DNA from: Mytilus californianus
Lineage: Eukaryota
Direction: 5' to 3'
NCBI RefSeq assembly: GCF_021869535.1
Contig: NW_026262581.1
Span: forward strand, 15,686,001 to 15,750,000
DNA: 64,000 bases
The notes beneath the pieces are model-generated. The model ran no database searches, was not told the DNA's origin, and was given only the letters and a program-made list of their open reading frames with translations. How positions within the stretch are numbered: position 1 is the first letter of the stretch; each line of letters starts with the position of its first letter. A program made the translations under genes and the position numbers. Below are positions 45,380 to 63,723 of the stretch, in pieces.

Positions 45380-45383
45380 ATGC
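45380..45383 (+). CDS. LU-FReD exon 1 coding part (ATG C)
   Basis: gagaaaATGC|gtaagt is conserved identically in the paralog at 62401. Phase 1 fits exon 2. Confidence 0.7.
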
Positions 45384-48300
45384 GTAAGTCAGTATGCCTT
45401 TTCCTTCACTATATCATACATAATTATGTTTAAAGTATGATTATACCGCACAGCAATGTATATGTAAAGCTTTATATTATCAATTGTATGTAGAAGAAAA
45501 TTAGATTATATTGTTTTGTCGTTTTATTTAGGATTGTGATTTAGATAAATGTGAACGTATAGCTATATTGAACTGATTCAATAGTTTAATAAAAGTTTTA
45601 TATGCCCTTATGTTGTGCTGTTACACCACTGTCCTAGACTATTGGGAGAGAGTTGAGCGCATTTTAGCTTACTATATACGGTATGTGTTTCCCTCATTGT
45701 TGAAAGCCGTACGGTGACCTGCACACATTCGTATCCTTCTGGTATGTGGCGGATTGTTGTCTCTTTGGCAATAATATCACTTCTCCATAATTTCATAACT
45801 AGATTTTAAAAAATTGGAGAAACCTTGCATTATATGGATTTAATATACAAACAGCTTAACTGTTTGTTTAACTTTATCGATTTAACTATGATCTAGAGTA
45901 ACAAGGATCTTAGATATCAGATGAATATTAAAATTGTATAATGTACAATTACAGCTTATTTCATGTATAACAATACGCATATGAAGCTTGCCTCCATAAA
46001 TGCTGTTGACATTTTAGTCAGTAAAATATCATTTTTACCTTGAATATCACTTTTGGACCAGTACTAAAGGATAAATGCCGGTATAAAAATGCACCATACA
46101 ACAAACATTCCCTACGCGTTTTGTTCAGTTGGCCATATTAATCTTTGAAAAATTCTTACTGTCAGAAAGTTCATTGCTGATAGAAAATGACGAGAAAATC
46201 TTCAGTGGTCATTAACGACAATTTGAGATATACTCAGTAATTTTTCTCGCAATAAAAACGGAAAAAATGAAGAATTTGACCGGAATCGTCACTTCAGATC
46301 TCGGAACCAGAAGTAGGCACTGAATATATGTTACCAAAAGTGAAACCCTGCATTCCTGGTCAAATATCAGCTGCGCGTCAATTGTCAATAGACTGATCAT
46401 AGATACCAGGCTTTACATTTTGTACGCCAGAGGTGCGTTTCGTCTATAAGACTCATTAGTGACGCTCGAATAAAAAAAAGTTAAAAAGTTACGAAGTTGA
46501 AGAGCATTGAGGACCATCATTCCGAAAGTTTTTGCCGATTACTGCTTACTGCTTATGTAATTCGATCATTCCTAGTGTTAAGTCAAGTAAGCCGGGTTCA
46601 CAGACTACTTAAAGTGATAAATGGAAGCAGCCATCTTTGTAAACTGGTTTTGCGCATACATGATCTGAAATCTATATTTTCTCGCATTTTATTTTGTTAC
46701 CGAGTTACGGACATTTTCATTTAGGGTTGATTCCAATCTGAATTGACTAGGATTGTCAGTTTTCCTACCTAAGGTCGGTGGTTCTCTCCACCAATAAAAA
46801 GTGACCACCACGAAATATCACAATAGTGCTAAAAGTAGCGTTAAACACTAATCAATCAATCAATCAATCCAACAGCTTTGATTTTAGCGCTAATGATGAG
46901 TAAACGAAACGTGTGACTGTTGTTCCAAATCATAAGTCTTTATAATCTTTTAAGTCAGAAGCCAGCCGTTGTTGTTGATTGATGTCTGCCATACTAATTT
47001 TTCCTTTAATTTTTATTATTATCCATTTTGTCATGTCGGGGCAATTTATAGTTCACTAAACGATATGGTTTTGCTCTCATAACCTTTTTAATCTTGGCTT
47101 GCTGAAGAGAGCGGTATGTGATTCATTTTAGATCCCACTTTCTCAAAAACGGTTACCGATCTGATAAATAATATTTTCCCTTAATTTAGAGTACGATTTT
47201 TTTTTAAGTTGGTGCGTCCTTTGTTCATTAAAGCTTATAATGAATAGGCGATTGCATGTCTTATCGTTTTAATTGAATCGGCTACATTGCCATGTAATCT
47301 TAATTTTCCGACATGAAAATATAAACTGTTTTGCGGTAGGAATACAATGCATTAAAGTTTGTTAAGACATATGTCTTAGGAGGTATGATGGTCCGTTCGC
47401 TGAAGTGCGATGGTCTAAATGACCTTAGTTACAGTTTCAAACTAAATGAGAGATTGTCCTTTTTAATTTTACTGCATGTGAACATAATTCTACGTGTATA
47501 GTTTATCTTTACTTACTTCCTCTCGTGAGTTCCACTTTTACTATAATATTATAATATAGAGAGTATGTTTGCGGATCAATGTGTCTTTATTTAGAGAATA
47601 CCACGTTTCATCGTTCTTAAAAAAACAAACCTGTAGATTTCGAAAATAAAAGGATCCGCTACAGAAAGCTAAATTTCCCACTCTCTACTAATCACTCCCC
47701 TTTTCTGTATTATTCAAGTTTATAAGCCTTTTATTTACTTGTTCTCATGTTGAATGTGCATTTAATACTTGCGACTGGACTTTGCACTTCGAATATATTT
47801 ATTGTTTATGTTGTTTTGTTTTGTATTTGCTATTCAAACAAATACCGAGTGTTTCCATTGACTGAATTAGTACTGGTTTTAATGAAAAATAACCTTTGCA
47901 TGCAGTGGTGAATTTCTGAACGAGTGTACGCACATTGGCTCATTTTTGTCCGATTTATCATCACAGTTTTAAATAAAATGGGTAATACTCTCGATGATTT
48001 ACTTCAAAATCCGGAAAAAAAACCTGTTTTTAACAAACAAATTGACTTCTACATCGACATGTGAACATAGACGACTTTGAAAATATAGTTTATGTAGTTC
48101 ATCGCACTTCAACGTTACCACCAACGCACTTCGGCGTAGCTATCAACAAGATAGTGTCTCAATGCCACCATCGCACTTTAGCGTGAACAAAAACGCACTT
48201 CAGTGTCAAACCATCGCACTTCAGCGTAATCATCGCCGTTCGGAGTACCATCGCGGTTCAGAGTCGTACACATATACTAGAGAACTGATGGAACAGTAAA

Positions 48301-51300
48301 GAAGAGATTTTTTAATAATAATTGCATATAGAACCCACTTTCGGTCGCGTGCTTAGTAACGTCATAAATAACGCAATTTATGGTCACATTGATGACATCC
48401 ATCAAAATTTCCCAAGTATCATAATTCTTATTAATCTGTTTCAGGTCTATTGAGATATTTGATTTAAAGTATTTGTATAAAGATTTACTATATTTTTCAG
48501 TCAAATGGTCTGTCTTTGTGTTTCTCATATCATTTATAGGTATGTATTTATCGAAAATATATAACGCTAAACCACCAAACAAAATAATGACGAATTGCCA
48601 TTTTTATGTGGTCATTTCATTTAAATTTTAACTTCAAATAAATTTATCTAGTGGTAGTATTTTTATCTGCACTGAATACAAAAAATGCTTTGAATGATTT
48701 ATTTATTTTCCAATTTTTTTTTTTAAAGTAAATATGACGCAGATATCATAGTTTTATATCATTAAGTACTGTCTATTTTATGAAGAATGGATAAAAAGAG
48801 GGGGTATGATGACTTAATAGTTTTTTGTTTCTGAAAGCATTTTGTAAGCAGTATCTCTAATATTTGTTTCAAAATTGTACCAATTCAATTTCTTGTTTTT
48901 CTCGTAAATATTGTTAACAAAATATATAGTTTTGCTTAGATCTTGAAAATAAGCACGATGATTTATATATACCTGTAATAAAAATATTTGATGGAAACAC
49001 GATAGAAGTGAATTTTAAGCAAAACATAACAGTTAAGATTGATTTCGAAACTTTAGATAAACCTGTTATATCCATATATTACTATTGGTTTCTTACAAAG
49101 TTCAACAATGGAATTGTTTGTGACAAGAAACTCAAGTTTGACAATGTCCTTTTTAGTATTATGATTTATTTGTGTGTCTCATGATAGAGTGTAAACAAGA
49201 ATGTTGGTCCTGCAGTGGAGTTGAAACCATTAGCGAGTGTAACCATCGTATACAGTGTAATGATGGTGAGGTCAGTTATATTTCATATTTTTTTTAATTT
49301 CCGATCTACATAAACAACTAAAAAGACTCAGAGTAGTTTTTATGTCTCATTCCTTTGGATGCAAATTGTCCCTCTCTTCCTGTCTGCATTTTTTTTTATC
49401 CTTATGAAGATGATTTCATACAGTAGCATTTTCAGGAGAATAAAAAGAAGCTGTAATTTACCTTTAACGTCAAGTTCCGCTATATAAAGTATGCCCTTTC
49501 ACTGAATAATGTAAATTTAGTGACTATGTTGATTGCATAGAACGAAAGAGAAGATACCAAGGTGACGATCAAAAGTCACTAAAAAGTTAAGAAAAAAACC
49601 ATGATAAAAAACGAACGACGAAAGACACACAGCAATAAAATCTTTACACAGAACACTAACATGTAGGCAAAAGGAACCCCAACCATGCTGAGGGGTAAAC
49701 TCAAGTGCTCCAGAAAGGTAAGTAATTCCTGCTCAATTCGTGACACCTTTCGTGTTAATCTTGTTAGAATACGTGTATGATTCAAATCCTGTGATAAGCA
49801 TCTTATTATAGCGGATTGAAAAATATCTCTTGTCTAACACAAGGACACCAAAATAATGCAAAAAAAAAAACATACTTTCAGTCTCTAAAACTTGCCTAAT
49901 GTGAAAGTTTGAAATGAATTCATGGTTTTCAATGACGAGCGATAAACGAGACTTTTACCGGTCATTGAAAAATAAATAAGTATTAAATACAACATTGAAT
50001 ACATCAGCAATCCGACCTCTTTCAACAAAACTATAACAAAGATAAACACAGGTACTCTTGAAGGGTAAGCACCTAATGAACTTGAAATAAGGATATCAGT
50101 TCAGTCTGTTCCGTTTTATTTCTCTACTTAAATTTATCACAAGATAGTTGTTTTTTTTTGTTAATACTAATACTTATTTTTATTGCAGGTCTGCTTTATG
50201 CACAACTTTGTAACCGAGTCCGGTACTGAAGAGTTTGATTACGGATGTGGCTCATCACTGGTATATTAAACTGTAATGTTTGATAGTTCAAAAAGACCCC
50301 AATAAAAACTGATTGCATCAAAACATCATTTGGACTGTTTTGGATAGTTGCGTCATTGGCAATTATACCACATCTCATTATTTTTATATAATACAGGTGT
50401 TTTATACGGTGAATTAATTTTCAAATGCTAGGAAATCATTTTGCTGTATAAAAATTGCTATATTCAAATAAGGATGCTTTTTATAGCAAAAAATAACGGG
50501 AAAAACATCTTTTAAAATGACAACAAAAATTCTATAATAATAGACAGACGTCTTTTTATACTACAAAAAAAGTTACATAATTTGTATTTGGCAAAAACTT
50601 TCGAAAATATTGGTCTTTAATGCTCTTCAGCTTCGTGCTTCGTTTAGCTTTTTAACTTTGTTAACTCGAGCGTCACTGACGAGTCTTTTGCATACACAGT
50701 TTTAAGTCTGGTATCTATGTGAGCTTATTATACAGTATTCCAAGCTCTAGATTGTTCTCTCTGTAAACGTTGTGAATAAATTTAACATAACCAATAAAAT
50801 GCAATATAAACCAACATCCCACATACGAAAAACATTAAAATATGACATACGAAAACTGACGACGTTCAGGACTTGGTAAAGGCAGATGAAAATAGGTTAA
50901 ATTAGTATTATGAGATCTCAACCTCCTTCTCTTTTAAAATCGCTCAGTAGATTAATAAACTCAAATAAAAGAACATAAAAACCAGTATATGAAAAACACA
51001 CAACAGAATATTCATAAAAAGGTGCATTTTTTTTCACACAATGTAAAAAAATGAATTTATAAACAAAAAAAGTTGATATAATTTATTTCTATTTGTTTCG
51101 AAAAAGGCTTGTAGTAATTCGGCTGGTTCGATACTGGGGCGCCGATCAGAAGGTCATCATGTGAAGTGCGCACTTTGCTGCTATACCAGACTATGTAATG
51201 CTAATTTGACTTGCACAAGTTCTGGTCAATTTCGTAAGTAGACTATATATTTTTATAGCTCAAGTTAGGATGTTCACTATTTAGTGTTTTAATTGCACAC

Positions 51301-54300
51301 ATACACGTAGACCATTAAAATGTATTTCCGACTTTGGAAATCATTCGTATATAGAGATGATACATCTGAAAAGAAAATACCTATCTTGTAGAGAAGTGTG
51401 TTTAACTCAGTTCTTCATTTACATGTATTGCCAGTTTTCCTGCCGATGGTCGGTGATTCTCTCTGGGTTCTTCAGCTTCCTTCACCAATTAAACCTGGAC
51501 GTGATGATATAGCCATGGTCGTCGCTTAACACAACAAAAAAAAACATATATCTTCAGTTGTTTATATTTGAACCAATAAATCATTTATCATCTAAATAGC
51601 AATAACATGATGGGGTTGTCATGTCAAACCCTCTCGTATCATTAATTGTAAAATATATCGAAAGCAGTTAAGATTTAAACCTATTTACCATATATATAAT
51701 TCTTATTTACCATACATTTCCAGCACTAAAATGTGTTTATGGTACCTTCCCTTTATCGGATAGGCTTAAATACAATCTGAAGATGACGGGAGAAAATAGT
51801 CCACTAAAACAGTTCGATCAAATCTTATTTTCTGAAATTTCAGTTCCAAACCACAATAATATATGCATAGAAACTATTCTTCTTGTTTTACATGTATATT
51901 TATTTTTGTTGCAAAAATATCAAATAAACCCTGAGTTGTTTGTTTTGATATTTCACATTTTTCGTTCTCATCTAAAAGTAAATCTGAATATCCCTTTCTG
52001 TTGATGAAATCAAACCTAAATATGTTAAAATATTCTTTGTACTGAAAAACCATAGATCTTTAAACTATGAGGCAATATTTTGTTACTTATGAAAGAAATG
52101 ATATCTTATCCCAACTGTTTATATAAATACATTTTGATAGTTACATAATTATAAAGCATGAGAAAGATTATATTAAATATCCCGGAAATCTTTTCAGCAT
52201 TAACACTTCCACGAGAATGTGCCGACTTAAAATTATCTGTAAGCGGAGTCCATACAATTTACCCATATGGACGATTGCAGCACCCTGTATCTGTCTTTTG
52301 CTATGTAGATTCAAGTTTGCATCCTTGGACCGTGAGTTTTCAATTTGTAGATATTACGAGACTTTAGCTTAATTCAATAAAAATTGCCTATCTATTTGAC
52401 TATTCTTTAGGTACCGTTTTGTCATACAGGCCCTCAAGTATTCAAAAATTTGTTGAGCTTTACTGCTGAAGGTTAACTGTTATATTCAGTTACTTGTAAT
52501 TACACCGTGATATATTATCTTAATGGACAATCTACTTTGAAATTGATGTAGAAATTGAATCCTGAACTGGTTTTAAAAATATATTTTTTTGCGTCCGAAA
52601 CACTTTTCTGGATGTACCTTCATGAGGTACACTCAAAGCCAAATGTTTGAAAGCCAAGTATGTGTAAGTATCGAAACACGTAAAGAGCTTTATGACCAAA
52701 GAGACATTACTATAATAGCCAAATTCATCTAAGGCCAACTTTGCCAGAAGGAGTTGGAACCTTAGTTTTACTGTTTTATTCAAATGTCTTCAAATAAGTT
52801 CAACAAAGTGGTGTATATATTCAAACTAAACTGAAAACAATACTACGGCATCAAATTAATATCTCAACGAATATAAAGTTAAAAGTTGTTTGTCATTTGC
52901 CAAATTATATATTAAGTATGTTCGCTTTTCTTTTGTCAGATATTCGGAATCCTCTAGTTTTATGTAGTGTCAATAAAAATTTTGCCCGCCACTAATACTT
53001 TTCTTTTCATAACTTTATTACATACAGTTTAAAAAAAAACATTTTTGAAAATCTTATAAAATCCTTGTTATTCTGTAATAGTTTTTGAAAGAAAAAAAGG
53101 GGCATATGTTAAATATATGAAAACAATCTAGAGAAAATAATTTCCCGCCAAATTTTCAATTGATTATATATCAAAAACAAGGACACGGACCATTCATTTT
53201 GTTCTGCTTTTTAAATTCTGTTATTTGAATATTATCTATTTATAACAGTCTTTTAAAAGCTTGTTTATTTTGAAACAGCGAGGCGAACATCCTCAAACTC
53301 AGTAAAAAAAGTGATGGACGTCTATTAAGGGAGATGACCCTTTAAGTTGTAAATTAATTTTTCATGAATGTTGATCAATAGTTACGATATGTGTCTCTTA
53401 ATCTATATGTAACTCCTTTTACTACTTTCAATCATTAAACTCGATTACATGATTTCAGGTCATTCAACGACGAATTAATGGATCAGTCAATTTTTATAGA
53501 GACTGGCAAGCATACAAAACTGGATTTGGACAAGCTAACGAAGAATATTGGTTAGGTAAAATAACCAGAGAAAAGACAAAAGAGAGGGGGAATATATGTT
53601 GAGGATAATAGAAAAGTCATTTGTAGAAAAGTGAATAAAAATTTAATAGGGCTCACTGACAAACCAAGAAGGGAAAAATCAAATGTGTTCGATCTATGAC
53701 GAGTTTATAGATAAATGTGTTATATCTATAATGAGTTTATCGATAAATGAAAATACCATTTTGCTAAATTCCGTGGGTTAAAAGCGCTTTTCTTAACCTA
53801 CATTCATCAGGAACGCTACAACCTTAACATTTGAAAGCCAGAGATGTAAAAATGCATCTCAAGGTAAGGAGCTATATGACCTAAAATGGAACTACAAAGA
53901 AGTGCAAAAATTATAACATTATCTTTGCCTGAGAGAGAGAGAGAGTCGGAACTTTATTTTCCTGAAAAGTTAATAATTCATGAACGAGGAATTTTAGAAA
54001 AAAAGCTATAAGTATTGTCATTACAGAAACACTGACTACTGAGATGATGATTCCATCGGGGACTTATGGTCACCAGCAGGGGTATCGAGCCAGTGGAAGT
54101 AATTGAACATAACACTTTAATAGTGTCGTGCGTCTGAAGCACCTTTGAGGACTTACCTTTATTTCGAACGCTGGAACCTTAACATTTAAAAGCCAGTTTG
54201 ATAGTAATTTATAAAAAAGATGATAGTGCGTTGTCAACGGTATTGCGGTTAAAACATTTTAATTTTTACTTTTTATCAACAAAACAATATTACCAATGTT

Positions 54301-57300
54301 GATGTAGGTACATAAAATGACAATTCAATGCCTCTGAAATTTAATCGATTATTCGTCTTTGTAACGGAAAAAAAATGTTTTAAAGATAATTTCTGAAGTC
54401 TAGTAAAACATGTTTTTCATAACAATAGATAAAGTTCTTTAATCTTGCTTTAGACAATTTGTATGGTACCTTTTAGCTCTAGAGCTGCTTAACGACGATA
54501 ACTCCAGACATGCGCATTGGTCACAACTACTTGGGCTAGTAACATGTTTATGTAAGCAAACCCTTTGTCATTCGTAGTACAAAAGTTTGGTCATTTATAT
54601 CCGGACTTATGCTTTTTACTTGTGTTCTGCTGAATATCTGAAGCTGTTCGTCTAAATTAATTTTTAATCGTTGTACTCATTTGATGATTATTTATTGACA
54701 AAAATAATTGTCAGATAGCATTAAATTCACTGTATACTAACATTGATTCTTGAGATACGTGTTGGATGGTTGGCTAAAAATATCATACATAAACCTTCAG
54801 ATACTTTTGAGTTGTGTTGGTTTGATTGTGTTTGTAGGTTTGTTGTCTTGTCTCGTCATTGTGGATTAATGTAGTTTGTTATTACTTTTCCTGTGAGTTG
54901 AAGTCTTTAGTTTTCTATGTTTTGTTTTGTTAACTGTTGTTTGTCTTTTGCTTGTTTTTCGACTTTTGCCATTACGTCGTCAGTTGATTTTTTGACATAC
55001 GGATTTGAATATTTCTTTGGTATCTCCCACCTCTCCTTGATCTGATGAAACGTTTGTACAAGTTAGAATATGTTACCATCAGTTTCCTGACTACCCCGGT
55101 TTCTTTGAGATATCATTAGATTTAGAAATTGACTAATTATATAAATTTCTATTATGCTATTATATATATCTAATGTTTACAGGGAATGATAACATACATG
55201 AGCTGACAGCAGACGCAAATCATGCATTGATGATACTGATGACAGATTTTAGTGGAGTAACAAAGTTTGCCGAATATCTATCGTTTCATATATCTTCTGA
55301 GGATAATGGTTATCGTTTGATGGTCAGTAAATATGATGGAACTGCAGGTATGTCATGTATTTCTTCAAGTAATACACTGTTGATAACAGTGTTTTCTATG
55401 TCAATACATAATAGATATCGATGACCTACAAAATCACAGGGTTTTTACTTAGATGAGTTCCACGACGGGTACCATACGTGGAGCAGGATCTGCAAACTCG
55501 TCAGGAGCACGTGAGATCACCCCGGCTTTTGGTTAGGGTTCGTGTTGCTAAGACTTTAGTTTTCTATGTCCTGTTAAGTATACTGTTGTATATTGTGTGA
55601 ATTTTGCCATTGAATTGTCAGTTCATTTTCGACTAACAAATTTAAATATCCCTTTTGTATAATTTGCCTCTCTTCTGAGTCCATGTGAACAAATTAACTT
55701 AAATATAGATCCATCAATGAGTAAAGTAGGATGTAATTAGGAAAGAAGTCAAAGAACAATATTGCTAATCATTTAATCATCAACATTAAAAAGTATATAG
55801 CAAATATTTTGCATCACATACTTAATTGTGTACGCGGATGTTGCAAAATAGTTAAAGTGTGTTTATATATGTATAACGTTTTGATGTATTATTCTTATAT
55901 ATATTTCCAAGTGGTAAAAGTATTTGAAGATAATCAAAGTCATGTTTTAACCAAGGTCACAATTTGCACACGATATCTAAGTTACGTTGAAACGTTATAT
56001 AAAGATAAGAAGATATTATATACTTGTCTTTCAGACAACAACAAAAATTGCAATATCAAAAAGTTTAACGTGCGCACAACCCCCTTTTTGCCCTTTCTAG
56101 GCCATATGCTTACAAAATTGTAAAACAAAAACCACACGATAATAACCTCAATAATGAATGATAACTAAAACGGCGCATAATTTGAAAGTTCTTATAACAA
56201 CAGGAAGCTTGCTAAGCTATCTACAGCTGTTGGCGTGGATACTGCATTCAAGAACACAATATCTGATTCACAGCTATGTAGAATAAGGGAAGTGGTATGT
56301 CTGCCAATAAGAAAACTATCCAAATGAAGCGGATTTAAGTATCTAAACCATTTAACGTTGATCTAAAAAAAAATGCTTCAAAACAGGACATGGATTCAAT
56401 GCTTAAATGAAATAATATATCTAATCATAAATAGCTAATTCTTTTTTTACATTTTTTTCTGCAAATTATTTATTTTCAATTGACAATCGCATGGAAAAAA
56501 AACGCTAATTCAGAAATCGCGATTTTCATTGCTAGTTGATCAATTTGATTAATCTTTAGTTATCTTACAAACAATTGCTCAGCTTATATCTGAAGAATAA
56601 AAAACAAAACAGTTCTTCGAAATATGTTGGCTACCATAACAGTTAAAAATGTGGTACAAATCTGTATGAAAAAAAGTAAAATAACAAAAATACCGAACTT
56701 TCTTTATTCAACACGGAAAATCCCTTATGAAAGGGCAAAATCAAAAGTTCAAACACATCAAACGAATGAAAATCAACTGTCATATTCCTGACTTGGTACA
56801 GACATTTTTCAGAAAATGGTGGATTAACTTACATAGTTTTGTACTAGTGACTAGCTATATATATATAGTCATGATTAAAATGATTAAAATTGCACTTTAA
56901 ATAGCTTTATAGTAAAATTGACGAACATTAAAAAATAGTATTCCCGAAGAGAATATATTTGGTACCAACAATATAAAATAGAAATGGAAACCTGTGTTCT
57001 TCCTTTTCTTTACCAAAAGTCAAATCGCCAAATATTAAAGATGATTGGATAATCGAAACGGAAACATTTTATAGTAATAAAATAATATTTGATAAACTAA
57101 TAAATAAACGTAAATGAATATGCGAATACAATCTAATAACGAAATCATTCCCCACTGTTTGGATTAACGAAATTAGAAGCGCTATTAGTAATCCAACAAA
57201 TTTAAAGCACGTAAATATCCCTAATAACAAAATATATGATATGGAAAGAAAATTTATTTCTCCAGAAAAAAATTCAATTAAAATCATATTTTAAAAAATA

Positions 57301-59836
57301 CTAAATAAATGTACTAGTCCAAAATGTGAAACTAAATGGAATAGAACATTTAAAATGGAACTAGACTGGCAATCAGTTTAAAAAAACTACCCAAGCTGCC
57401 TTGATCAAACAAAATTTTCCAATTCATAATATACATTATACTGAATTTAAATTGTACCAAATGCGATAGTCCGATGGCCTATGTAACCTATGTGGCAAAT
57501 TTTTGGAAACTTAAGAACTTCATTTCTATTTCTGTTATAAATTCAAAACATCATTGAAGAAATAAAAAGGATTGCTATCTCTATCTCTGTGCATTTATAT
57601 AACGCATAACTATGATGTCCAAAATATGATTATTGGATATAATCAAGAGCTTGATCAAACGCAAATAAATATTGGACATTTTTATAGTGTTTTCGGGAAA
57701 GTTTGAACTGCTTGATAAATGAATTAGGTATTAACAATTCACTTGGAAACTCAACATATACCCCCACGACACTTACTAAAGAGGATATCCTGGATAATCA
57801 TAGGTCTGTTCTATGTTCCTTTGGAATTTCAACCAAAGATGAAGAACAGGATCTTCCATTACTGGATTGGATACCTAAACTAAATAAGTGTCCTTGCAAA
57901 CCACGGTATATTGCTGGGTCTTCCAAGTGCTCCACGAAACCTCTTTCTACCTTATTAACATCAATTTTATCAGCAATCAAAGCCGGGCTTCAAAGTTATT
58001 GTGAAATTCTAGAGATGTGGATATTGAAAAATTCCAAAGATCTTTTAGAGTACATACAATCTAAGACACTTTCATCTTGCAATAGTATTTTAAAAAACAT
58101 TTGACTTTTCTACACTTTACACAAGTATTCCCTATTCCAAACTAAAAGACAAACTAAAAGAGTTGGTCCTGCTTTGTTTCATAAAAAAGAATGGCCAACG
58201 TAGATACAAATATCTTGTCTTAGGGAGGATAAATCCTACGTTTGGAGGACGTGTTTTTTAACAAAAAATTGGCATTCCCATGGAAAATACTGTGCCTCTC
58301 TTCTTGCCGACTTGTTCCTCTATTTATAGGAGGCTGACTTCATACAGGAACTTCATAGCAAAAAGAAAGAAGCTAGCAGTATCCTTTAACTTTACTTTCC
58401 GCTATATAGATGATGTTCTCTCACTAAATAATTCAAAATTTGGTGACTTTATTGAACTATCCACTCGAAATTGAGATAAAGGATGCAACATATACAGTTA
58501 AGTCTGCCTCATATCTTGACTTACATCTAGCAATTGCAGTGAGGGTCGGTTGAAAACAAAACTTTACGAAAAAAGAGATGATTTCAGCTTCCCAATTGTG
58601 AGCTTTCCATTTCTATGTAGCAACATTCCAGCAGCGCCTGCATATGGAGTATATATCTCCTAGTTGATAAATATTTCAGGGCTTGTATTTCCTATCATGA
58701 TTTCCTTGATAGAGGGTTGCTGCTAAAAGGAAGCTCTTAATCCAAGAGTTCCAAGAGGTGAAGTTGAAATCACCACTTCGTAAGTTTTATGGACGCCATC
58801 ACGAGTTGGATGACCGTTATGGGATATCCGTTTCACAAATGATAGCGGATATGTTCCTAATGTCGTAACTTCAATCCCGTCACCTTTTCCCGAATGTGAC
58901 TACCGAATTAGACTTATTACCGGTTTTGTACTAACATGAGCAACACGACGGGTGCCAAATGTTGAGCAGGATATGCTTATCCTTCTGGAGCATACTACTC
59001 ACCACAGATTGTGTTTCTTCATAAGTGCACATACATTAATTTCACAAATAATCCTTCAGCAAAAATTCTAACGTGTTTGAATCACGTGTCAAGTCGATGT
59101 TAATATCTAACAGGCATTTTACCGGGAACACAATTTAAATTACAAAAGATTTCATAATTGGTGGTCTGTTGTTTACACGAGATAGGATTTGAACTTTAAT
59201 CATTACAAATGGTTAGAAGGACCAAAAAATATATAACAGTTATTCATATCTTTATAATTGTATTTAAAGAGGACAAAGTCATATGAAAATGCAAGATTTC
59301 AAGATGTGTAGAATACTAATTGAAAACAGATACTAGTAATTATATAGAATATATTATGTAGAGAGTATTTGTTTCACCCATTCGTATTTTCCCTGGCAAA
59401 TGGGATATGTAATAAAAACAGGGAACCCTCTGTCAGCTGCCCTAAACTGATTACGGTATATGTATTCCGGATGATTTTAAATCAAAGATATTATTCATGC
59501 TTAAATAGATATAAGAAGATCTTAAAACATGTATAAGAATATAATAAGATGCTTAATCAGTAATAAATTACTCTCATTTCAATTTCAGGAGATTCTTTGA
59601 TCAGACATAATGGGTACAAGTTCACTACTTTTGACCGGGATAATGACGGCTCAGGATCTAATTGCGCCATACTTTATAAAGGTGCATGGTGGTATGAAGA
59701 CTGCCACAATTCAAATTTAAATGGAATTTATTATCATGGCCATCATGATGAATTTGCCACTGGGATAGATTGGAAAACATGGCATGGATATTATTATTCA
59801 ATGAAAACTACTATGATGATGATTAGAGAATACTAA
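45380..59836 (+). CDS. Secreted fibrinogen-related protein with an N-terminal Ly6/uPAR-like (three-finger) Cys-rich domain, 9 coding exons, 322 aa
   Basis: Exons 45380-45383, 48501-48539, 49188-49270, 50189-50260, 51107-51233, 52198-52331, 53459-53555, 55183-55347 and 59589-59836 are all GT-AG and phase-compatible, 969 nt in total. Signal peptide MLKWSVFVFLISFIEC; CWSC...CALCCYTRLCN; FReD motifs RECAD, WTVIQRR.NGSVNFYRDW..YK.GFG, EYWLGNDNIH, FTTFDRDND, GAWWY..CHNSNLNG. Confidence 0.88.
47373..48270. mobile_element. Insertion in LU-FReD intron 1 that is absent from the paralog
   Basis: The flanks are contiguous in the paralog (~63485). Repeated catcgcacttcagcg motifs at 48100-48250 have an inverted copy at ~47398. 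Possible catat duplication. Confidence 0.55.
48501..48539 (+). CDS. LU-FReD exon 2 (signal peptide KWSVFVFLISFI)
   Basis: tttttcag acceptor, gtatgt donor, 39 nt; conserved in the paralog. Confidence 0.8.
   Translation, partial: SNGLSLCFSYHL
49188..49270 (+). CDS. LU-FReD exon 3 (CKQECWSCSGVETISECNHRIQCNDGE)
   Basis: gatag acceptor, gtcagt donor, phase 1/0. Confidence 0.82.
50189..50260 (+). CDS. LU-FReD exon 4 (VCFMHNFVTESGTEEFDYGCGSSL)
   Basis: ttgcag acceptor, gtatat donor, 72 nt. Confidence 0.82.
51107..51233 (+). CDS. LU-FReD exon 5 (ACSNSAGSILGRRSEGHHVKCALCCYTRLCNANLTCTSSGQF)
   Basis: The acceptor is weak (aaaaag); gtaagt donor; 127 nt open frame with the CCxxxxCN motif. Confidence 0.8.
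52198..52331 (+). CDS. LU-FReD exon 6 (start of the FReD domain: LTLPRECAD...HPWT)
   Basis: ttttcag acceptor, gtgagt donor. Confidence 0.9.
53459..53555 (+). CDS. LU-FReD exon 7 (VIQRRINGSVNFYRDW...EYWL)
   Basis: tttcag acceptor, gtaaa donor; canonical FReD motif. Confidence 0.95.
55183..55347 (+). CDS. LU-FReD exon 8 (NDNIHELT...KYDGTA)
   Basis: tttacag acceptor, gtatgt donor. Confidence 0.94.
57050..57690 (+). mobile_element. Probable L1/Tx1-like LINE 3' fragment
   Basis: Remnant KWNRTF.MELDWQSV...CNLCGKFLET resembles the Cys motif C-terminal to an RT; heavily decayed. Confidence 0.45.
57690..59005 (+). mobile_element. Penelope-like (probably Naiad-type) RT region, decayed, in LU-FReD intron 8
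   Basis: WIPKLNK.P.K.RYIAGSSKCSTKPLS, FDFSTLYT.IP, GIPM, FRYIDDVLSLNNSKF, LYEKRDDFSFPIV.FPFLCSNIPAAPAYGVYIS, LRKFYGRHHEL. Confidence 0.85.
59589..59836 (+). CDS. LU-FReD exon 9 (P-subdomain; DRDND Ca site, CH motif), TAA stop
   Basis: tttcag acceptor; canonical FReD C-terminus. Confidence 0.96.
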
Positions 59837-62400: not shown

Positions 62401-63723
62401 ATGCGTAAGTCAGTATATCTTTGCTTCAATCTGTCATACATAACTATGTTTATAGTTTGATTATAAGGTACAACAACGTATATGTAAAGCATTATCAGCT
62501 CGATTTTATGCCGTAGAAAATTAGATTGTATTGTTTTGTCGTTTTTTATTTATGATTAGGAGGTAGGTAAATGGGAAACCTTAGCTAGATTGAACTGATT
62601 CAAGATTTTAAGAAAAGTTTAATATGTTCTTATGTTGTGCTGTTATAGCACTGTCATGAACTGTTGAACTGTGCTCCAAAACATGGTTACCACGCCAAAT
62701 ACTTTATGTGCTTGTCCCAGGTCAGGAGCCAGTGGTTGTCGTTGATTCCTGTCTGACAAACTGATATCCGTTTATTGCCTTAGTAAAATAAGATTGTTTG
62801 TGTTCTCACATCCTTATTCTTTGGGTCTTTTGTGGATGTGATCTCATTGACATTCATATCATATCTCCATAATTCCATAACTAGATTTCAACAAATTTGA
62901 GAAACATTGCATTAAAAAGATTTAATATATAAAACAGTTGTTTTTAACAAGACTCTGATCTGCTTACTGTAAATCAATTTGTTTACCCCCTTCTATATAC
63001 ACCACTTCGCGACGATTCAATTTCACGATTTTCAAATTTATTTGATGTAGTTTTAAAAATAAGGAATGATCAAAGATTTAAATATTAGCCACGATTGATA
63101 TTCGCGTTATTTTACTACTAGCAAAAGTCGCGAAAATAAATCGCTCGTAAAATGGTTGGTTTACAGTATTTAACTTTATCGATTTAACTATGTTCCACAG
63201 CATAGCAAGCATCTTGGATTTGAGTGTAGCACCAAGTCCAAAAATTGTATGATTAACAAATATAGCTTATGTCATGTATAAAACAACGCATATGCACCTT
63301 TTTTCCAGAAATGCTGTTGAAATTTTAGTAAGTAAAATAGCGTTTACCTTGAATATCACGTTAAATTTTGGACCGGTACTAAATGATTTCTTTTGAAACA
63401 TTAAAAGTAAAATATTAAACTTTCGACATGAACATATAATGCAACTGTTTTGTGGTTAAAATACAATGCTTAGAATATTTTAAGACATGTATAGAGCTAA
63501 CGGAACTGGTACAAAAATAGTGAAGTTTTTTTATATAAGAATTGCATTGAACTCACTTTTATTCACGAGCTTAGGGAAGTCATAAATGACACCAATTCCC
63601 AAGTATTATTTATTTTCAATCTGTTCTGATCTATTGAGATATTTGATTTAAAGCATTTGCTGTAGGATCTACTATATTTTTCAGTCAAATGGTCTGTCTT
63701 TGTGCTTCTCATATCCTTTACAG
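62401..63723 (+). CDS. Tandem paralog of the LU-FReD gene: coding exons 1 (62401-62404) and 2 (63685-63723); the rest lies beyond the window
   Basis: ATGC|gtaagt, then tttttcag|TCAAATGGTCTGTCTTTGTGCTTCTCATATCCTTTACAG|gtatgt, giving MLKWSVFVLLISFTG. Exon 2 is 36/39 nt identical to 48501-48539, and the flanks are collinear with 44490-48800. Confidence 0.75.
62967..63166. mobile_element. 200-bp MITE with TA flanks (Tc1/mariner-like) in paralog intron 1
   Basis: ta|ctgtaaatcaa...ttggtttacag|ta; absent at the matching site (~45865) of copy 1. Confidence 0.65.

Follow-up and report, generated by a model that had tools for sequence, protein, structure and literature searches.

The locus analysed here raises the question of whether the small exons preceding a ficolin-like gene in the mussel Mytilus californianus belong to that gene, and what kind of domain they encode. 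The window, which is the whole stretch of DNA that was analysed, comprises 64,000 nucleotides of contig NW_026262581.1 (positions 15,686,001 to 15,750,000 of the forward strand, assembly GCF_021869535.1) and is AT-rich animal DNA without N. An earlier note on this window had proposed that a three-finger domain of the Ly6/uPAR type (LU) is fused here to a fibrinogen-related domain (FReD). The reading that we favour is that the window holds an intact nine-exon gene for a secreted LU + FReD protein, a member of a Mytilus family built from a shuffled cassette, acting by the mechanism of sugar binding and docking that is proposed below; we give this reading as a whole a probability of roughly 0.78. 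LU-FReD is a real, Mytilus-wide class of lectins whose front domain is unannotated in the databases checked, and the gene in this window is an intact member with a truncated public model.

The exons were rebuilt independently on the + strand from open stretches, splice signals and reading phases. The resulting gene has nine exons between 45380 and 59836 (Table 1), with a coding sequence of 969 nt that specifies 322 aa and carries one terminal stop, and the spliced product has the N-terminus MLKWSVFVFLISFIEC. The eight introns all begin with GT and end with AG, and the phases are consistent across the nine exons. The earlier note had claimed five small exons upstream of the FReD exons, and the independent rebuild returned an identical model. 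The cysteine numbering that it had given for the module agreed to the residue with the translated model, in which cysteines occupy positions 16, 20, 23, 32, 38, 44, 62, 68, 87, 90, 91, 96, 102, 116, 143, 266 and 279. Exon 1 forms the 3' end of a block of ~120 nt that is more conserved with the tandem paralogue described below than its surroundings are, and this block is probably the 5' untranslated region. Exon 2 matches the N-termini of two M. edulis proteins (P0077 and P0076, MFKWSVFVLL..) and of the tandem paralogue (P0154). The signal peptide would comprise 16 residues and be cleaved after Cys16, a position that is occupied by Cys or Gly in relatives; cleavage at this site would leave 12 cysteines in the module, enough for six disulfides.

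Table 1. Coding exons of the LU + FReD gene, in positions of the window
Exon	Content	Position	Strand	Remarks
Exon 1, coding part	ATG + C, phase 1	45380-45383	+	Donor GTAAGT
Exon 2	Hydrophobic core of the putative signal peptide, KWSVFVFLISFI; phase 1 in and out	48501-48539	+	Matches relatives' N-termini
Exon 3	Putative signal-peptide end (E, C16); then C20-x2-C23-x8-C32-x5-C38	49188-49270	+	
Exon 4	Mid-module (predicted finger 2), C44-x17-C62	50189-50260	+	Conserved in 17 paralogous loci
Exon 5	Predicted finger 3, with loop G-[RK]-R-x-E-G-H-H and knot C68...C87-x2-C90-C91-x4-C96-N-x4-C102	51107-51233	+	
Exon 6 (FReD exon 1)	Short linker and A-subdomain, Cys116-Cys143 pair	52198-52331	+	
Exon 7 (FReD exon 2)	VIQRR..GFG..YWLG	53459-53555	+	Pfam Fibrinogen_C
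Exon 8 (FReD exon 3)		55183-55347	+	Pfam Fibrinogen_C
Exon 9 (FReD exon 4, P-subdomain)	DRDND, Cys266-Cys279, His after the second Cys, stop	59589-59836	+	

The same gene plan recurs close by and in other mussels. A tandem copy lies ~16 kb downstream (ATG at 62401, exon 2 at 63685-63723) and continues past the end of the window (C1:15750001-15760000). It corresponds to RefSeq XP_052072194.1 (P0154), a protein of 322 aa that starts with MLKWSV, and it has the same first exon (ATGC followed by GTAAGT) and the same exon plan. The two copies differ at ~7% of coding positions; their exons share 92-94% nucleotide identity, compared with 70-79% in the non-coding flanks, and the ratio of nonsynonymous to synonymous substitution rates (dN/dS) is 0.51 in the module and 0.26 in the FReD. 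Exon 3 is 96% identical to that of the tandem paralogue and 41-68% identical to those of other loci. In M. edulis, M. galloprovincialis and M. trossulus, the annotated orthologues follow this exon plan and have lengths of 322-326 aa, and the exon-wise identity to the M. edulis orthologue is 78-100%.

Evidence from RNA and from public records weighs against the favoured reading at several points. In one M. californianus RNA-seq run, sampled to ~6% and from an unknown tissue, zero reads were found on the exons between 47570 and 53569, FReD exons included; the sampled reads in the region are partial matches to intronic repeats and are silent on splicing. The NCBI model of this gene leaves out the five upstream exons. 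In M. galloprovincialis, the cDNA of MgFREP4 (CBM41043.1, P0160), whose FReD shares a 90% cluster with the M. edulis orthologue P0077, joins a signal peptide directly to the FReD; that is, module-less products exist in the clade. These points are taken up below with the explanations that they would favour.

The lack of RNA depth in the sampled run would be expected if the gene were a silent or decaying duplicate, structurally intact and unexpressed, with the tandem neighbour as the working copy. The fast turnover of Mytilus FReD families, in which two of the paralogous loci fetched (L021 and L023) carry in-frame stops, and the swelling of the last intron by a retroelement-like insert point in the same direction. 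However, all nine exons are open, the sixteen splice signals are canonical and every cysteine is retained, and dN/dS against the tandem neighbour is below 1 in both domains. The RNA evidence comes from a small part of a single run, and the expression of immune lectins is often confined to certain tissues or has to be induced. We therefore consider a silent duplicate unlikely.

A second explanation places the LU exons outside the FReD transcript of this gene: they could form a separate upstream gene for a small secreted LU protein, or they could be skipped, the FReD being made alone. The public model would agree with this. RefSeq XP_052106458.1 (P0089, "ficolin-1-like [Mytilus californianus]", 227 aa) consists of four FReD exons that are 100% identical to those of this gene, exon 6 being 100% identical to residues 15-58 of the protein. 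The FReD-only cDNA of MgFREP4 and the zero sampled reads joining LU and FReD exons would agree with it as well. Against it, the RefSeq protein starts at an ATG within the intron (52158) and reads through the acceptor of exon 6 (52158-52197), which gives it the non-secretory N-terminus MRKIILNIPEIFS without a signal peptide, whereas the relatives are all secreted; the model XP_052106458.1 seems to be truncated. Exon 5 contains no stop and leaves in phase 1 at a consensus GTAAGT donor, in agreement with the acceptor of exon 6, which is also in phase 1. The annotation of the tandem copy in this genome is of full length. MgFREP4 itself could be the product of a separate paralogue or reflect the use of an alternative first exon. 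An alternative first exon of the MgFREP4 type, which would yield a secreted FReD-only isoform at this locus, was sought and was not found in the window or in the 10-30 kb around it; a weak look-alike of the MgFREP4 exon at another locus (L014) has no FReD exons nearby.

Transcripts of relatives also bear on this second explanation. In intronless cDNA-type Logan contigs obtained from Mytilus runs, a single open reading frame (ORF) spans signal peptide, module and FReD: 328 aa in 1181 nt in L033, 318 aa in 1080 nt in L034, and 325 aa in 1216 nt in L045. Contig L033 maps to the M. californianus genome as seven separate pieces. Contig L045 aligns to the window in seven collinear blocks that end within a few bases of the seven main coding-exon borders, with the exception of an 11-nt chance overrun into an intron. 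Exons 3-5 are thus joined to the FReD exons at these borders in homologous cDNAs, and likewise in RefSeq models. The claim in the earlier note that the module is spliced to the FReD holds for the relatives, in cDNAs (L033, L034 and L045) as in RefSeq models, whereas the RNA-seq check of the junctions in this gene returned zero reads. The LU + FReD architecture is real, and we infer the junctions of this particular copy from its own splice signals and the borders seen in its relatives. That its LU exons lie outside the FReD transcript is, on this evidence, distinctly improbable.

With the favoured gene model, the product carries a cysteine-rich module of ~85-90 residues between the signal peptide and the FReD. 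The spacing of the module is C-x2-C-x8-C-x5-C-x5-C-x17-C-x5-C-x18-C-x2-CC-x4-CN-x4-C, framed by Cys20-x2-Cys23 at the start and Cys90-Cys91-x4-Cys96-Asn97 near the end, and its cysteines are invariant or nearly so across 17-30 relatives. We take this spacing to be the LU frame of CD59, with its CxxC and CC-x4-CN elements, plus an extra pair formed by Cys87 and Cys102. Apart from the cysteines, the most conserved feature of the module across the family is the loop of finger 3, G-[RK]-R-x-E-G-H-H (window 51134-51163); the invariant dibasic pair in this loop may act as a site of docking or of processing.

The fold was predicted with AlphaFold on a module-only member of the family (XP_063416090.1, P0044) using an alignment of 30 sequences. 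The predicted local distance difference test score (pLDDT) was ~90 over the module except in finger 3. A Foldseek search of this model against the PDB gave three-finger proteins in all of the best 50 rows, among them GPIHBP1, PSCA, Lynx, CD59, uPAR, the ectodomains of TGF-beta/BMP receptors and snake toxins. VIA, a structural search over 48,161 chains that is independent of Foldseek, placed GPIHBP1 (Z 9.9), CD59 (8.5), PSCA (8.4) and LYPD6B (8.0) at the top when the whole module was compared; the first 39 rows were consecutive three-finger/LU proteins (Z 9.9-3.5), and unrelated rows appeared from Z 3.4 down. The model of the full-length M. edulis orthologue (P0077) showed the same strand pattern in the module as that of P0044.

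Sequence profiles point the same way for some members of the family. One relative (P0034) passes Pfam UPAR_LY6 (PF00021) with 25.3 bits against a cutoff of 24.8, covering profile positions 5-82 of 82, and another (P0029) scores 24.5 bits against the same cutoff. A hidden Markov model (HMM) built from the subfamily of this gene scores P0034 and P0029 at 82-92 bits, so the sequence link between the subfamily and these two proteins is solid. The structural models and these profile matches support the assignment of the module to the LU/three-finger fold. The three-finger reading of the earlier note is borne out by the P0044 model, whose best matches in both structural searches are exclusively LU/three-finger proteins, and by the UPAR_LY6 match of P0034.

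Some results speak against this assignment. The fold was predicted for a family member that is 43% identical and not for the product of this gene, and in the P0044 and P0077 models alike the part modelled with low confidence is finger 3, which holds the loop proposed for docking. The three module exons of this gene, searched singly as short pieces, gave no Pfam match. The modules of the orthologue P0077 and the paralogue P0154 remained below threshold, their best match being Toxin_TOLIP (PF00087) at E ~0.1 over the whole profile. The family profile searched against PDB sequences returned chance matches only, with ribosomal L37e first (E ~0.03) and PSCA at E 1.7. In a feature search of the ESM Atlas, the named neighbours of the P0077 module were all three-finger families, with scores of 0.76-0.78, below the reliable range. 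The missed Pfam thresholds, the first rank of L37e and the low Atlas scores could be cited for another disulfide-rich fold (EGF-like, TNFR-like, or a zinc ribbon as the L37e matches would have it). Such a fold is nevertheless very improbable: the L37e matches span only the FGKR..C..C stretch of the module, the cysteine spacing mirrors that of CD59, two independent aligners found three-finger proteins only as best matches over the whole module, and P0034, whose UPAR_LY6 match extends over nearly the entire profile, connects to this subfamily at 82 bits.

The FReD head of the protein was recognised from single exons. Against Pfam Fibrinogen_C (PF00147, gathering cutoff 22 bits), exon 7 alone scored 44 bits (E 3e-11), exon 8 scored 42 bits (E 1.1e-10) and exon 9 scored 92 bits (E 4.6e-26), and in the orthologue P0077 the four FReD exons tile profile positions ~2-219. 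The best solved relatives of exon 9 are FIBCD1 (E 1.6e-27), tachylectin-5A (TL5A) and ficolin-2. The alignment of exon 9 keeps the DRDND motif, the NCA...C-H arrangement of a cysteine pair followed by His, and the aromatic positions of the acetyl pocket; one pocket Tyr of FIBCD1 and TL5A is Phe in exon 9, which is the same as in ficolin-2. Judged by these alignments, the FReD is complete, is closest to those of FIBCD1, tachylectin-5A and the ficolins, and keeps the predicted calcium and acetyl-pocket motifs.

The earlier note had also stated that no collagen, coiled-coil or Ig stalk separates the two domains, and this agrees with the translated model, in which only 13 residues lie between Cys102, the last cysteine of the module, and Cys116, the first cysteine of the FReD. 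Collagen (PF01391) was not matched in any family member, whereas vertebrate ficolins in the same list have it, and Ig-family Pfam domains gave no match in sets of ten and of thirty family proteins.

Comparison with known systems shows where this protein agrees with and departs from each of its parts. The module resembles LU proteins (CD59, GPIHBP1, PSCA, Lynx1/2, SLURP-1/2, LYPD6B and uPAR) in its size, its all-beta predicted three-finger fold and its CxxC and CC-x4-CN elements. LU proteins have 8-10 cysteines, whereas the mussel module has 12, with the extra pair; unlike them it is neither anchored by glycosylphosphatidylinositol nor free-standing, as it runs straight into a lectin domain, and its finger-3 loop is specific to the mussel family. 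The FReD shares with FIBCD1, tachylectin-5A, ficolin and MFAP4 a complete Fibrinogen_C domain in which the calcium motif (DxDxD), the disulfide of the P-domain with the His after it, and the aromatic pocket residues all align. The N-terminus differs, being a folded LU domain in place of the collagen-like stalk of the ficolins, the coiled coil or transmembrane segment of FIBCD1, or the short Cys-bearing peptide of TL5A and MFAP4. Like molluscan FREPs, the protein is of the secreted FReD type and belongs to a large, fast-duplicating family of immune type; in contrast to gastropod FREPs, which combine immunoglobulin superfamily (IgSF) domains with a FReD, it has no IgSF domain, and in contrast to the deposited MgFREP4 sequence it has the LU module.

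Dozens of Mytilus genes have this module and arrangement, a recurrence well above what chance would produce. In the M. californianus genome, at least 44 relatives of exon 5 were found. At 18 of the 19 paralogous loci fetched, FReD exons lie downstream of the module exons with order and orientation preserved; the loci are on five chromosome-scale contigs and range in amino-acid identity from 35% to 100%. A profile of exon 5 built from 17 loci finds 46 protein clusters among 1.84 billion representatives, and all of the named ones are from Mytilus. The family plan met in this gene is a signal peptide, an LU domain in three exons and four FReD exons, giving ~315-330 aa. By these exon and profile matches, the family comprises at least some forty Mytilus loci, and this gene is one of two tandem copies. 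The earlier note had suggested a distinct class of secreted pattern-recognition proteins; the distinct LU-FReD architecture stands, being present across the family, while the recognition role is part of the mechanism proposed below.

The LU domain behaves as a cassette. The three-exon LU unit is entered and left in phase 1 and can therefore be shuffled, and several arrangements occur. A single module precedes the FReD in this gene and two modules precede it in P0027, and two LU modules are followed by an EB domain and the FReD in P0013 and P0063 (VDI03422.1 and XP_063408749.1). In M. galloprovincialis, the module is combined with EGF and Lectin_C domains in P0020 (XP_076111664.1, "neurocan core protein-like"); in this protein and P0151 (XP_076111663.1), one complete and one partial module precede a pair of EGF domains and a C-type lectin head, which indicates that the module is not tied to FReD heads. 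These sister architectures carry a homologous module (74-92 bits with the subfamily HMM) with the same cysteine frame, placed N-terminally on a lectin head, and compared with them this gene is the minimal form, with one module, no spacer and a FReD head. Single-exon genomic ORFs were found on Mb-size contigs of ENA assemblies from another organism: one in L035 (ERZ25069866) encodes one LU module and a FReD in 317 aa, and one in L036 (ERZ25073814) encodes two modules and a FReD in 436 aa. A search of the M. californianus genome for intronless copies of module plus FReD found none, the single-exon ORFs there being FReD-only.

How such a protein might act can be proposed from the two domains. The FReD would bind acetylated sugars on microbes in a calcium-dependent manner, and the LU domain would serve as a protein-docking surface through which the captured target is linked to a conserved partner of the host, be it a receptor on haemocytes or an effector of the humoral kind. 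The LU domain would thus take the place of the collagen, coiled-coil or Ig stalks of other FReD lectins. Docking is preferred over oligomerisation because known LU domains bind proteins, because the basic/His loop of finger 3 is invariant and not diversified, and because one module is found with different lectin heads. A broader proposal is that mussels have a humoral recognition system of their own with the LU module as its common adaptor, in which the cassette sits on varied lectin heads and its finger-3 loop docks all of them to one host partner. We regard this broader proposal as speculative and rather doubtful. If it were true, the adaptor would have as its partner a receptor on haemocytes or an effector of lytic or complement-like type. 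The module would then play a role comparable to the one that MASP and the collagen stalk have in the lectin pathway of vertebrates, or to that of CD59-type LU domains with pore formers.

In bivalves, few immune-type families have expanded as much as the FReD lectins. To our knowledge, the N-terminal partners described for them are collagen, coiled-coil and IgSF segments, or there is none. A FReD partnered by a folded LU/three-finger domain adds a class of architecture to these. The domain is present at dozens of Mytilus loci and also on a C-type lectin, which raises the question of what the module binds.

The earlier note knew of no characterisation of this fusion, and full-text searches of the literature found no paper linking three-finger, Ly6 or uPAR domains with FReD lectins in molluscs; the proteins themselves have entries in RefSeq and UniProt, where they are named for the FReD alone. 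A review of molluscan pattern-recognition receptors places FREPs among Ig-domain receptors and mentions no LU type (PMC5877582). The public names of the family in RefSeq are "microfibril-associated glycoprotein 4-like" and "ficolin-like", and Fibrinogen_C is the sole Pfam domain in those entries for which the searches returned recorded domains. As the public models of this gene and of at least one paralogue are cut to the FReD, and as these records give Fibrinogen_C alone, surveys based on annotation would miss the LU-FReD class.

Some further observations were made at related loci and within the introns. The XP model of another paralogue (P0084, contig C88, 215 aa) is likewise cut to the FReD and has no signal peptide, and its closest relative has a cDNA-type contig of 329 aa (P0073). 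Two of the paralogous loci look damaged: in L021 (C143:62105700-62115699), FReD exon 3 is interrupted by an in-frame stop and FReD exon 1 could not be detected, and L023 (C13:50343000-50352999) has a stop or frameshift in FReD exon 2. In the intron between exons 8 and 9, + strand open frames at 57688-58474 contain a reverse-transcriptase-like ..FRYIDDVL.. motif, recognised by eye; these retroelement-like frames, which gave no Pfam match at E<=0.01, make up much of this last intron of 4.2 kb. Short repeats in two other introns (52931-53170 and 50353-50389) are covered, in all four runs, by partial RNA reads in their hundreds and by contig pieces of high depth, with many variant letters; they look like dispersed repeats that are transcribed elsewhere in the genome.

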